The position numbers and the translations under genes were made by a program. Shown piece by piece: positions 1-64,000 of a stretch of 64,000 bases of DNA. The first letter of the stretch is position 1, and every line of letters starts with the position of its first letter. A model generated the notes under the pieces. The model saw only the letters and a program-made list of their open reading frames with translations. It had not been told where the DNA came from and did no database searches. The stretch lies in sequence record OR532817.1, one strand, 5' to 3'.

Positions 1-504
1 AATCTTTATAATGTTTCTAAACAAGTATCTGGTGGTGATTTAATAAGTTATCATCCATACAAAGAAGAAATTTCCAAAAAGAAATCTGAAACAGCCAAAC
101 GTCAATATAAAGATGGTACTAGAGATCCAAAAACAAATTCTAGACCGGGAAGCAAAAATGGAAGATGGAATGGTGGTTCAGTTGCTAAACATGAAACATG
201 TAAGTGTGGTAAGTGGAAACAATATAGTGCTAAACAATGTATATCATGTTATGATAAAAATGGAGAAAATAACCCTTTTTATGGAAAAGAACATACAGAA
301 GAAACCAAAAAAATATTATCAGAAAAGATGAAAAAACGTTCAGAAAATGGTTATCTTCCACCTAATACCAATAAAATAGAAATCGATGGAATAATATATA
401 AATCACAAGCTGAAGCTGCTAGAAAGCTTGGTGTATGTGATGGTACAATAATTCATCGTTTAAAATCAACAAATCAAAAATATAAAAATTACAAACGTCT
501 ATAA
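1..504 (+). CDS. I-TevI-like GIY-YIG intron homing endonuclease, C-terminal part (5' end outside window; missed by the ORF track)
   Basis: Frame 1 is open from base 1 to TAA at 502-504: NLYNVSKQVSGGDLISYHPYKEEISKKKSETAK...SRPGSKNGRWNGG...CKCGK...CISC...GENNPFYGKEHTEETKKILSEKM...KIEIDGIIYKSQAEAARKLG. This is colinear with the I-TevI linker, zinc finger (CxC..CxxC), NUMOD3 and HTH as I recall them. Confidence 0.9.
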   Translation, partial: NLYNVSKQVSGGDLISYHPYKEEISKKKSETAKRQYKDGTRDPKTNSRPGSKNGRWNGGSVAKHETCKCGKWKQYSAKQCISCYDKNGENNPFYGKEHTEETKKILSEKMKKRSENGYLPPNTNKIEIDGIIYKSQAEAARKLGVCDGTIIHRLKSTNQKYKNYKRL

Positions 505-682
505 TGCCGAACGACTATCAAACGCACATAGAAATATGGAAGCAAGTAGAGTACACTCAAGCGAGTGGAAACGGGGTGGGACTTCATTATGAAGTTCGTG
601 ATATAGTCTTATCTATATGGTAACATATAGCAGTACTGTTTAAGTACGGATACAGAGGTAGCGAACTGTATTGAAAATAATG
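1..682 (+). mobile_element. Group I (IA2, td-like) self-splicing intron in thymidylate synthase, 3' portion
   Basis: P7 strands GACTAT (513-518) and ATAGTC (603-608); P7.1 CATA-GAAA-TATG; P7.2 CACTC-AAGC-GAGTG; P8 GACTTCA-TTA-TGAAGTT; P9 CTATATG-GTAA-CATATAG; P9.2 ATACAG...CTGTAT. Ends ATAATG (omega G at 682) like the T4 td intron, followed directly by in-frame TS coding sequence. Confidence 0.9.
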
Positions 683-979
683 TCAGCAGATACATTCTTG
701 GGGGTTCCACTGAATATCACATCATATTCAGTACTCACCCATATGATAGCACAAATTACTGGATTAGAAGTTGGTGAATTTATCTGGAACGGTGGAGATT
801 GTCATATTTACTTGAATCATATCGAACAAGTAAAAGAACAATTATCACGAGATACAAAAGAATTACCAAAATTGTGGATAGACCCAAGAGTTACAGATAT
901 TACAAAATTTACAATGGATTCTGTTAAATTGATTGGATATGATCCACACCCGGTAATCAAAGCACCAATGGCAGTATAA
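683..979 (+). CDS. thyA: Thymidylate synthase, 3' exon
   Basis: [15 protein letters not shown]...GDCHIYLNH...[14 protein letters not shown] carries the ThyA motifs (R)SxD, N and HIY and the typical C-terminus. The track's start at 671 lies in intron sequence. Confidence 0.93.
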
Positions 980-982
980 TAT

Positions 983-1012
983 AAAAGGGAGACATTAAGT
1001 CTCCCTTTTTTT
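983..1012. terminator. Bidirectional intrinsic terminator
   Basis: AAAAGGGAGAC-attaa-GTCTCCCTTTT between convergent genes. Confidence 0.85.
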
Positions 1013-61625: not shown

Positions 61626-61824
61626 AAAAAAATCTCCTTAGTCAATTTTGTTGTAAGTTTTCACCTTACTTAAAGTTATTTATCAAAATAAATCAGACCC
61701 CATTAAAATATAATAAAAAAGTCCAATTTTAACATAATAATATTTATCTTTTAAATATTTGAACGAATTAAAATCTAAATGATATAATATTATTGCTTAT
61801 TATGAAATGAAACGGAGTTCATAA

Positions 61825-62811
61825 ATGAAAAAATTATACCTATTAGTTGATACACAAAACTGTTTCCATAGAAGTATCAATGTGTCATCACAAAGTGTCG
61901 ATATCTGGACAAAAGTAGGACTTGCCCTTCACATCACGCTCAGTGGCCTCAAAAAACTTCAGGACATGTTTGATCCTAATCACGTTGTATTTTGTAGTGA
62001 AGGAAAATCATGGCGTAAAGAATTCGATGAAGATTACAAACGAAATCGTTCAGTAAAAAACGCCGCCAGATCTGCACAAGAAAAAGAAGAGATGAAAATT
62101 ATGTTCGAAATGATTAATGATTTTGTAGACTTCGTTGATACTAAAACGAACAGCACTCTTTTACGTTTACCTAATACCGAAGCTGATGATTTCATCGCTC
62201 GTTGGATCCAAACTCATCCAGAAGATGACCATATTATAGTCAGTACTGATACCGATTTTAGACAACTTCTTTCACATAATGTACGCCAATATAATCCAGT
62301 ACAGGAATATATGTATACTATTGATGGTGTTTATAACAACAAAGGTGAAAAAGCAACTGATAAAAAAGGTAAAGAACTGGAAACTCCAAATCCAGAATTT
62401 TTGCTATTTCAAAAATGCATTAAGGGTGATACTTCTGATAATGTATTCAGTGCATATCCTGGTGCTCGAATGAAGAGTACTAAAAAAGCAGTTGGTATAG
62501 AAGAAGCATTTAATGATCGAATCAATAAAGGTTATGCATGGAATTCATTCATGAATCATAAATGGTTGCGTCATGATGGAGTGGAAGTAACTGTAAAAGA
62601 TGCATACGCCCACAATCAAGTACTGGTTGATTTGACAATGCAACCACAGCATATCAAAGATGCAATGGATGAACTTATCAACAACAAAGAAGTTAAAAGT
62701 ATTCAAATGGTCGGTGTTCATTTTTTGCGATTCGCCGCGAAGTACGAATTAGTTCATATTCAACGAAGCCCAGAAAGTTATGTAAAACTGTTTATTAAAA
62801 AGGACGAATAA
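61825..62811 (+). CDS. rnh: RNase H / 5'-3' flap exonuclease (T4 rnh-like)
   Basis: LLVDTQN; [14 protein letters not shown]; EADDFIA; STDTDFRQL; GDTSDNV. Confidence 0.9.
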
Positions 62812-63296
62812 TGCCAGTACTAAAGCCATTAACAACTTATTCATATATAATCGAAACTGAAAGTTCAGAAAAAATTGGATTAATTGTAGATCATAATAAA
62901 ACCAATAATAATTTAACTGGTGTTGAATTCTTTACTAAAGACGGTGTAGTTAAATTTGATAATATGAATGAACTAGAAGACCTGTTGGGTACATTTGTGT
63001 ACAAAGAATTGAAAGAAACGAACATTCAGGAGAATACTAAGTTCATTGGTGATTATCCAGTTAATGATACCGATAATGTTTATGATGTTCAGGAAGGAAT
63101 ACCAATTAGTACTTTCAGAAAGAGTGAAAAATCTAAAAAACGTTTTTATCCAGGTTGGTGGTTGATTAAATCTGAAAGTGGTGTTTATAATCCGAGATGT
63201 ACAATCAGTACTGATACGTATGATGAAAACAAAGATTCATTATACGGTCCATTTAAAACTTTTATGGAATTGACATATCAACAAAAACAACTCTAA
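62811..63296 (+). CDS. Hypothetical protein (161 aa)
   Basis: Start overlaps the rnh stop. Confidence 0.6.
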
Positions 63297-63306
63297 TTCA
63301 GGAGAA

Positions 63307-64000
63307 ATGATAAGGATATCATTTTATTTTTTTATGAAAGGAACTGAATTCTTTAAACGATACACACCACACGAAAGTTCCTATCTATATGAAGATATGA
63401 TAGATAGTACTGAACATGTATATATGAACGTAGTCCCTAGACAAACTGGGACTACTACTTCTCTTATTGTGTATTCTGTATATAAAATAATGGAAAATAA
63501 AAACAAATATAATATTGCGTATGTTTTATCAAATAAAGAATTTGTAAAACATATGTTCTATGAATTCGACAGTTATCTTGATTATTTTTGTATAGAATAT
63601 AACAAAGAGCATAGTCATGAAATGACTTATGAAATCCATAATAATAACAAGTATGTATTATTATTAGATTCAAACGAAATCGGGTGTATAAATCTCTGTA
63701 AAGTTAGTGATTCATTATATGGGTATAAATTCAATGAAAGAATTTATGAAAATCCAACAATGACTAATGTAGACGTACATCAGTTAATGGACGAAATATA
63801 TTCATTGAAAGAACCATCAAAAATAATACACAATAGCAATATGATTCATGTTAAAAATGTTGATTTGAGTATATACAATCCTAAATATACACCATGTTTT
63901 CAATTTTGGCATATAGATTTATTTCAGTATCAACAACGTATGCTAAATATATTAGGTAAAGAGCTATATACAAAGGATTGCCTATTGAAAGGGATATGTT
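63307..64000 (+). CDS. Partial ORF with degenerate terminase-ATPase-like motifs (runs off the window; missed by the ORF track)
   Basis: GGAGA RBS; open frame MIRISF...YEDMIDSTEHVYMNVVPRQTGTTTS...LFQYQQRMLNIL... Confidence 0.55.
   Translation, partial: MIRISFYFFMKGTEFFKRYTPHESSYLYEDMIDSTEHVYMNVVPRQTGTTTSLIVYSVYKIMENKNKYNIAYVLSNKEFVKHMFYEFDSYLDYFCIEYNKEHSHEMTYEIHNNNKYVLLLDSNEIGCINLCKVSDSLYGYKFNERIYENPTMTNVDVHQLMDEIYSLKEPSKIIHNSNMIHVKNVDLSIYNPKYTPCFQFWHIDLFQYQQRMLNILGKELYTKDCLLKGIC

Follow-up and report, generated by a model that had tools for sequence, protein, structure and literature searches.

Several systems are known in which a short DNA word is repeated along a genome or clustered at a functional site. 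HIP1 (GCGATCGC) of cyanobacteria is a short palindrome found lineage-wide, in all reading frames as well as between genes, with enriched outer variants; orphan methyltransferases for its inner sequence co-occur with it, and it remained unexplained for decades. The iterated words with a known reader, namely Chi, uptake and FtsK-orienting sequences, have each exposed DNA-handling machinery. TF1 of phage SPO1 is an abundant phage DNA-binding protein that distinguishes phage from host DNA, with a preference for phage DNA and for the early promoters of the terminal repeat. Phased repeats beside the cut site are typical of cos and pac regions, as in lambda cosB. Here we describe the palindromic hexamer AGTACT, whose abundance was flagged by an initial annotation of a stretch of 64,000 nucleotides (hereafter the window) of Klebsiella phage RCIP0023 (OR532817.1), and we compare it with these systems.

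As a description, the likeness to HIP1 drawn in that annotation holds: AGTACT is a lineage-wide, hyper-abundant palindrome, present in all frames and in intergenic DNA, and its outer one-base variants are enriched. However, it belongs to a virus and is AT-rich, whereas HIP1 belongs to cells, no methyltransferase comparable to those co-occurring with HIP1 was found for it, and some of its copies hold set positions in promoters and next to the end of the genome. The resemblance to Chi, uptake and FtsK-orienting sequences would lie in a reader protein that sustains the density of individually replaceable sites, but these words are asymmetric and directional, whereas AGTACT is palindromic and direction-free. 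As in SPO1, early genes with strong host-polymerase promoters are found in a long terminal repeat and the preferred sites overlap promoters; the label is the modified base hydroxymethyluracil in SPO1, whereas it would be a sequence motif in RCIP0023. As in lambda cosB, repeated and helically phased motifs sit right beside the terminase cut, but the motifs of known arrays seldom occur in the rest of the genome, whereas AGTACT occurs ~950 times. The ScaI target (AGT/ACT) is the identical 6-bp palindrome, with an enzyme-like sharp specificity, but phages avoid such restriction targets and AGTACT is 12-fold enriched. The site of the host protein SlmA (GTGAGTACTCAC) has an AGTACT core and a symmetric-dimer reader, but the phage avoids its required flanks. 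SPO1 TF1 thus appears to be the nearest functional precedent and HIP1 the nearest statistical one.

The window corresponds to bases 286175-350174 of the 350,174-bp record, i.e. its last 64 kb, and is identical to it in sequence. We joined the whole genome from eight sequence stretches, the last 64 kb of which match the window; positions with an L label refer to these stretches (L003:1 is record position 1, L004:15017 is record 65017 and L005:29553 is record 129553). RCIP0023 is a RaK2-like jumbo myovirus (Alcyoneusvirus) with 98-99.9% identity to RaK2, K64-1 and Muenster, and coliphage 121Q is ~72% identical to it. In public sequencing runs, the region was present only as assembled contigs, ~0.5% divergent, and a related-locus search using the terminase returned only RaK2 itself.

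The window harbours 126 AGTACT sites, compared with 21.9 expected from base composition, 16.3 from a Markov-1 and 32.6 from a Markov-2 model, and AGTACT has the highest Markov-1 z score (z 27) of the 4096 hexamers. The enrichment runs throughout the window, where AGTACT is the lone outlier among palindromic hexamers, the runner-up having an observed/expected ratio of only 1.9; the earlier count of 15 sites in bases 1-6000 was reproduced. The motif frequently stands within CAGTACTG, as had been claimed (33 of the 126 sites, with 0.6 occurrences of CAGTACTG expected). Over the 350-kb genome, AGTACT occurs 954 times against 79-118 expected (79 in the Markov-1 model), a ~12-fold excess, and CAGTACTG 248 times against 3. 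There too it leads the 4096 hexamers as an outlier and is the sole outlier of the palindromic ones.

We then shuffled synonymous codons within each gene, which preserves both protein sequence and codon usage. The window genes contain 117 AGTACT sites, compared with 40.8 +/- 5.2 after shuffling (z 14.6), and 30 occurrences of CAGTACTG compared with 2.2; genome-wide, the genes contain 809 sites compared with 255 (z 41). A 3-4-fold excess remains after both synonymous and codon-order shuffles. The sites fall in different reading frames, as initially described: 78 in the Ser-Thr frame, 28 as xxA-GTA-CTx and 11 as xAG-TAC-Txx in the window, and 442, 97 and 270 in the three frames genome-wide, all three of which are enriched. 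Like HIP1, the palindrome far exceeds expectation in both genic and intergenic DNA, with a density of 2.53 per kb in coding DNA equal to that of non-coding DNA outside the terminal repeat (2.67 per kb). According to the initial annotation, its proposal would fall if the enrichment vanished under control for codon and dipeptide usage, or if AGTACT were no outlier among palindromic hexamers; the excess persists and AGTACT remains an outlier. The excess is therefore real and acts at the DNA level.

This abundance contrasts with the fate of other palindromes. Eighteen of the 64 palindromic hexamers are wholly missing from the 350-kb genome, including CTTAAG (0 compared with 80 expected), CTGCAG (0 compared with 26-56 expected), CAGCTG, GCATGC, TGCGCA and TCCGGA; in the window, CTGCAG, CAGCTG, CGTACG and GGCGCC are all at zero. 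These absences represent extreme restriction-site avoidance and show that selection on hexamers is efficient in RCIP0023: the genome is strongly purged of restriction-type palindromes, and yet it harbours 954 sites of the ScaI type.

The immediate surroundings of the motif are symmetric. With the sites oriented on the coding strand, position -1 is C in 47% and G in 7% of cases, and position +1 is G in 49% and C in 6%, so that CAGTACTG is the preferred extended form and a preceding G and a following C are disfavoured. The latter two are the rarest flanks in all genera, whereas the strength of the C/G preference varies between genera, from strong to weak. Flanks carry no information past +/-1, and the sites therefore do not stem from a repeat family or mobile element. 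The half-sites AGTACN and NGTACT are enriched 2.3-4-fold and the full palindrome 12-fold, approximately the product of the halves. Single-base variants at the outer positions are also raised (AGTACA 2.7-fold, GGTACT 4-fold), as in HIP1, whereas inner variants are at 0.5-1.4-fold, and AGT and ACT split by one or two bases (AGT-N1/N2-ACT) are depleted. Dyad symmetry together with half-site additivity is the pattern expected for a symmetric dimer reading double-stranded DNA. The proposed enrichment of the GTAC core needs to be narrowed, as it holds when the core is part of a half-site (AGTAC or GTACT) but not otherwise, TGTACA being at expectation and CGTACG absent.

To delineate the distribution of the signal, we analysed genome samples of related phages. 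AGTACT is the most over-represented hexamer in RCIP0023 and in the samples of 121Q (E. coli; 40 sites, 6.0 expected), Munch (Salmonella; 67, 12.1 expected), BF (Serratia; 83, 12.0 expected), GAP32 (Cronobacter; 96, 11.2 expected), XaC1 (Xanthomonas; 132, 19.9 expected) and Hallingskeid (Erwinia; 114, 14.7 expected). It is in excess in every genus sampled (eight phages, seven host genera) and is thus a lineage trait, as HIP1 is. By comparison, there are 3 sites compared with 14.3 expected in Pseudomonas phage PA5oct, which its preprint describes as related to the RaK2-like group (bioRxiv 10.1101/406421), and 6 compared with 9.6 in T4. As a host control, a 50-kb stretch of E. coli K-12, a host of the related coliphages, has 3 sites compared with 4.3 expected, the motif being ~45 times denser in phage DNA. 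The excess tracks the phage lineage rather than the host. Our literature searches for AGTACT or CAGTACTG in phages yielded nothing relevant and no mention of the enrichment; papers on related phages, including the one on PA5oct, describe promoters and do not remark on it.

The signal is visible in the proteins. In the RCIP0023 proteome, no dipeptides are more over-represented than Ser-Thr (1.75-fold), Gln-Tyr (1.54-fold) and Val-Leu (1.52-fold), which result from translation of CAGTACTG in its three frames. Ser-Thr occurs 54 times compared with 24 expected in RCIP0023 orthologues and 23 times compared with 24 in their PA5oct counterparts, while the reversed dipeptide, Thr-Ser, is as frequent as expected in both sets. 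In each genus, 50-77% of Ser-Thr dipeptides are written AGT-ACT. Where Ser-Thr is conserved between genera, the codon pair is the same in 64% of cases, compared with 12-29% for other dipeptides with 24 codon pairs, and 72% of the conserved pairs are AGT-ACT. Site positions in common amount to 18-47% among enterobacterial phages, whose orthologues share 60-68% amino-acid identity between genera, and to ~9% for XaC1, with 53% identity. In four of nine capsule-depolymerase or receptor-binding genes (record 224431-247308), every AGTACT is located in the N-terminal third, and the exchange-prone C-terminal 60-70% are devoid of it, indicating that site density marks recently exchanged domains. The force that maintains AGTACT is thus sustained, lineage-wide and extends to proteins, and the sites are individually replaceable.

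Fixed arrangements of the motif were found in two places. The first is the terminal repeat, where AGTACT density reaches 7.5-7.8 per kb, compared with about 2.35-2.4 per kb outside. The dense zone spans record 123701 to ~144330, corresponds to the 20,030-bp terminal repeat of Muenster (a PhageTerm prediction) and contains early genes. In 25 sigma70-type early promoters of this repeat, AGTACT directly abuts the -10 box, and the final TG of CAGTACTG is the extended -10 TG, at its canonical position or one base away. In 15 of these 25 promoters, a second AGTACT overlaps the upstream edge of the -35 box, exactly 20 bp away. The promoter copies are all on the transcribed (+) strand, at a fixed position like that of a sigma70 element, and the early promoters of 121Q have the same layout.

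The second place is the genome end. The densest cluster of the genome, six copies with spacings of 40, 40, 20, 10 and 10 bp, ends 12 nucleotides before the base corresponding to the physical left end, and is thus a repeated motif in helical phase beside a mapped cut, as in cos and pac regions. RaK2 has copies at -108, -68, -58, -38 and -18 from the cut, 121Q at -62 and -18, and fEgEco12 at -98, -48 and -27; for fEgEco12, restriction digestion has confirmed the ends (PMC13070987). At the cut, RCIP0023, RaK2 and 121Q share GATATGCCACTA, immediately preceded by AGTACT; in fEgEco12, the corresponding sequence is the near-identical GATATCCCACTA, and nine additional bases follow AGTACT. The end-proximal AGTACT and the cut context are common to four genomes of two genera, and the helically phased array to RCIP0023 and RaK2 (Alcyoneusvirus). 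No array is conserved at the right boundary of the terminal repeat. Just outside it in Muenster (20031-20160), 12-bp ATTCTGTACACT-like units, each with a GTAC half-site, follow one CAGTACTG; at the right boundary of fEgEco12, there is no ATTCTGTACACT-like run and no AGTACT for 2 kb.

From the statistics, symmetry, clade distribution and placement in promoters and at the genome end, which are direct observations, we infer that a protein reads the motif, which kind of protein that might be and what its binding would do. In our favoured reading, which we regard as having about an even chance of being correct, AGTACT is the recognition site of a putative clade-specific, phage-encoded protein that binds as a symmetric dimer, with CAGTACTG as its preferred site. 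With a density in phage DNA ~45 times that of the E. coli sample, AGTACT would represent a sequence-encoded label for phage DNA. When bound to the site pairs 20 bp apart, over the -35 box and spacer of the host-sigma70 early promoters, the protein would block RNA polymerase and thereby cause early shut-off, activation being a less likely alternative. On the phased array 12 nucleotides from the left-end cut, cooperative binding may aid genome-end formation or packaging. The ~800 dispersed copies, equally dense in genes and between them, would reflect weak selection on overall density and not on single positions. The initial annotation had suggested a binding site for a genome-organising, packaging or self-recognition protein; the dyad flanks, the half-site product, the fixed promoter positions and the phased end array lend this suggestion indirect support, but the protein itself was not found. 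More tentatively, and with a clearly lower probability, one and the same phage protein might read AGTACT density as a label of 'self', silencing the early promoters, nucleating on the end array and occupying the chromosome. In a lineage without marking of its DNA by modified bases, such a reader could couple the end of early transcription to packaging and keep phage functions off host DNA. If so, the need for a label would have rewritten the proteome, with Ser-Thr, Gln-Tyr and Val-Leu becoming its most over-represented dipeptides.

Several observations count against a dedicated reader protein. The ~800 intragenic sites would titrate a repressor and could obstruct transcription. Spacing between sites is Poisson-like (coefficient of variation 0.96), and no regular spacing was found. 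The upstream promoter copy may partly match the consensus of an UP-element proximal subsite with a -35 box after it. Between RCIP0023 and RaK2 (2.5% divergence), AGT-ACT pairs undergo synonymous changes at the rate of controls (8/250 compared with 35/1114, and 14/250 compared with 55/1232); individual sites are therefore not visibly conserved over short time scales, and this comparison reveals no strong purifying selection on single sites. Enzymatic or gene-conversion drive predicts identical equilibrium statistics. Finally, scans of ~29 candidate proteins with Pfam, PHROG and Atlas revealed no sequence-specific DNA-binding domain.

These candidates comprised the methylases, the neighbours of the sigma factor, 20 early proteins and the two open reading frames upstream of the terminase. 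The scans yielded H-NS-like, ParE-like and kinase-like proteins, and no candidate had the right distribution. No HU-like gene was found among the scanned RCIP0023 proteins, the only nucleoid-type protein being the H-NS-like one. The latter is an early protein of 166 residues encoded in the terminal repeat (record 129553-130053), in which the N-terminal H-NS domain of Pfam is accompanied by a divergent motif towards the C terminus, at the position of the H-NS DNA-binding loop; its gene is detectable in Alcyoneusvirus and Asteriusvirus only. Two of the early proteins conserved between these two genera (L005:40095-40343 and L005:41026-41610, in the terminal repeat) are one of 82 residues with a ParE-like toxin domain (E 2e-10) and one of 194 residues with a weak, sub-threshold match to a protein-kinase domain, the Muenster orthologue of the latter being annotated as a putative protein kinase (HHpred, 99.9% probability). 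The open reading frame that overlaps the terminase start (window 63334-64000, continuing past the window end; full copy at L009:1037-1717) has PRQTGTT in place of the Walker A sequence SRQLGKT of T4 gp17, with loss of the lysine. It aligns to gp17 residues 151-286 with an E value of 4e-4 and a probability of only 35% (hhalign), and from its sequence it appears to be a degenerate paralogue of the large-terminase ATPase, not a DNA binder.

The first alternative to consider is an enzymatic drive on the HIP1 model, in which a modification enzyme and a mismatch or very-short-patch-type repair nuclease convert near-cognate sequences, the abundance of AGTACT being a by-product of repair bias. As its equilibrium statistics would be identical, it remains a serious rival, even if we consider it improbable. 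It would account for the enrichment of AGTACA and GGTACT, for the near-neutral turnover of sites over short time scales, for their absence from recently exchanged depolymerase domains and for the density peak in the terminal repeat, which must recombine or duplicate in each cycle. RaK2 DNA has also been reported to resist many restriction enzymes (data not shown in that study; PMC3622015). Asteriusvirus DNA is cut as predicted by ten enzymes (PMC13070987). The modification genes of RCIP0023 encode a DNMT3-like C5 methyltransferase, a phage Dam of 172 residues and a Mom-like protein. The C5 enzyme (record 65017-65904) has its nearest relatives in the catalytic domains of animal DNMT3A/B (E 3e-22), bacterial M.HaeIII and M.HhaI being much more distant. 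This relationship indicates an enzyme of the CpG type, which agrees with a report of CpG methylation in RaK2 (PMC3622015); AGTACT has no CpG. Among the modification genes, none was found for AGTACT or its inner core, as would be expected of a HIP1-type or restriction-modification system, leaving no methyltransferase for such a drive.

Nanopore data on relatives point the same way. Comparison of native with amplified DNA of Hallingskeid and Kaldavass gave signal at GATC, CCWGG and TGCAT only (PMC11780129), and Hallingskeid is strongly AGTACT-rich. The motifs equal in number the predicted methyltransferases, two in Hallingskeid and three in Kaldavass; the authors state that motifs and enzymes do not correspond one-to-one across the phages and that host methylases could be responsible (PMC11780129). 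Methylation of AGTACT is thus unlikely. The inner one-base neighbours of AGTACT are not strongly depleted (0.5-1.4-fold), and a very-short-patch-type sink is discarded, as the one-base neighbours are not drained. Accordingly, the methyltransferase/repair loop put forward in the initial annotation finds no support. A drive also leaves the fixed positions in 25 promoters and the 10-bp phasing at the genome end unexplained, and conversion of TCN-ACT to AGT-ACT requires two changes, although AGT-ACT accounts for 72% of the conserved Ser-Thr pairs.

A second alternative, which we find similarly improbable, is that AGTACT serves packaging only, as an element for the small terminase subunit or the end-cutting enzyme. 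The promoter copies would then be secondary, and the dispersed copies would enable the motor to distinguish phage DNA from that of the host or to re-engage. In its favour, the densest, helically phased array ends 12 nucleotides from the left-end cut, as is typical of cos and pac regions, the AGTACT-GATATGCCACTA-cut context recurs in three genomes, with the near-identical GATATCCCACTA and nine extra bases in fEgEco12, and the phage DNA is not marked as self by modified bases. However, no small terminase subunit was recognised in scans of the open reading frames near the terminase, and the one ahead of the degenerate ATPase paralogue has no detectable similarity to T4 gp16. The right repeat boundary lacks a conserved array, the precise ends indicate that packaging does not start at dispersed sites, and the fixed promoter geometry is not explained.

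It is very unlikely that a host protein reads the motif, be it the nucleoid-occlusion factor SlmA, in which case phage DNA would block cell division, or RNA polymerase. The SlmA consensus GTGAGTACTCAC includes AGTACT as its core (PMC3020112), and early promoters must presumably function before any phage protein exists. However, SlmA needs G, T, A and G at positions 1, 2, 4 and 5 of each half-site and a purine at position 3 (PMC3020112), whereas the phage flanks favour C before AGTACT, with G rarest, and the complete SlmA pattern has a single match in 350 kb; flanks and single site rule out an SlmA decoy. Moreover, the excess is found in phages of Enterobacterales and Xanthomonas, but not in Pseudomonas phage PA5oct or in T4, which grows on E. 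coli. Two other regulator sites were discarded by inspection: the LexA SOS box (CTGT-N8-ACAG), because its half-sites are reversed in CAGTACTG and the promoter spacing is 2 bp too long, and what we take to be the TrpR box, because of wrong half-site order or spacing.

Lastly, a by-product of codon, codon-pair or dipeptide usage, a repeated element or an RNA-level signal is hardly credible: both codons of the Ser-Thr frame are favoured (AGT 36% of Ser, ACT 49% of Thr) and this frame holds 62% of window sites and 55% of coding sites genome-wide, but the shuffles rule out an artefact of codons, dipeptides or Markov composition, enrichment is equal in all frames and in non-coding DNA, flank symmetry holds on the oriented coding strand without information past +/-1, and the dipeptide bias is opposite in direction, Thr-Ser being at expectation and the PA5oct orthologues having no Ser-Thr excess.

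AGTACT represents a clear case of a DNA-level signal that visibly reshapes amino-acid sequences proteome-wide, in a genome purged of 18 palindromes. It is a signal comparable to HIP1 in culturable phages of E. coli, Klebsiella, Salmonella, Serratia, Erwinia, Cronobacter and Xanthomonas, and a close relative without it, PA5oct, together with the two anchored contexts, early promoters and genome end, makes the question testable. The hexamer may be used as a one-line diagnostic of the clade in metagenomes and to flag recently acquired genes or gene segments, such as depolymerase domains, and it matters for the recoding and engineering of therapeutic Klebsiella and E. coli phages.

In the window (1-64000), the 126 dispersed sites, 33 of them CAGTACTG, amount to ~2.0 per kb, and 9 of them are outside annotated genes. 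The giant virion-protein gene (12331-22299, - strand; record gene coordinates and site list) carries 25 (2.5 per kb). Its XaC1 orthologue is likewise site-rich, and only 4 site positions are common to the window and XaC1 over 13 orthologous gene pairs. Two CAGTACTG 10 bp apart (38962-38977) are located at the 3' end of gene 36856-39000; their spacing equals the unit spacing of the genome-end array. As initially described, both arms of the terminator at 40.7 kb contain the motif (sites 40674 and 40684). Folding predicts a two-way terminator hairpin at 40664-40699, with energies of -23.1 kcal/mol on the (+) and -22.2 kcal/mol on the (-) strand (z -7.5 and -8.4) and a T run after the stem on either strand.

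Of the sites described as intergenic, that at 48720 (48720-48725, a CAGTACTG) is confirmed by the record annotation, between genes 47575-48687 and 48783-49964. Those given at 25894 and 26026 are indeed intergenic, in the 248-bp gap between genes 22379-25843 and 26092-26481, but start one base further on, at 25895 and 26027 (25895-26032 together), whereas that at 28558 is inside a small annotated open reading frame (28414-28587). Sites were also ascribed to an intron. According to the record annotation, two of them, at 632 and 730 (632-735), do fall in the segment that separates the homing-endonuclease gene (annotated as 'intron-associated endonuclease', GIY-YIG type, ending at 504) from the second exon of the split thymidylate synthase gene td (743-979), the first exon of which ends upstream of the window. 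Rfam calls no group I intron in the window, which contains only the 3' part of the intron.

Two further observations concern the genome end and the terminase. Inside the left end, a non-coding region at record 124.48-125.04 kb contains at least six sequences close to what we take to be the Fur-box consensus, several of them directly upstream of CAGTACTG, with hairpins following. Rfam returned no matches in this early zone or in the window; the Fur-box-like stretches could correspond to iron-regulated small transcripts or to a Fur decoy. The large terminase (record 1-2670, directly past the window end) has 889 residues compared with 545 in 121Q, and its surplus of ~340 residues (about 66-407) carries a LAGLIDADG domain, indicating that an intein probably interrupts the terminase ATPase.

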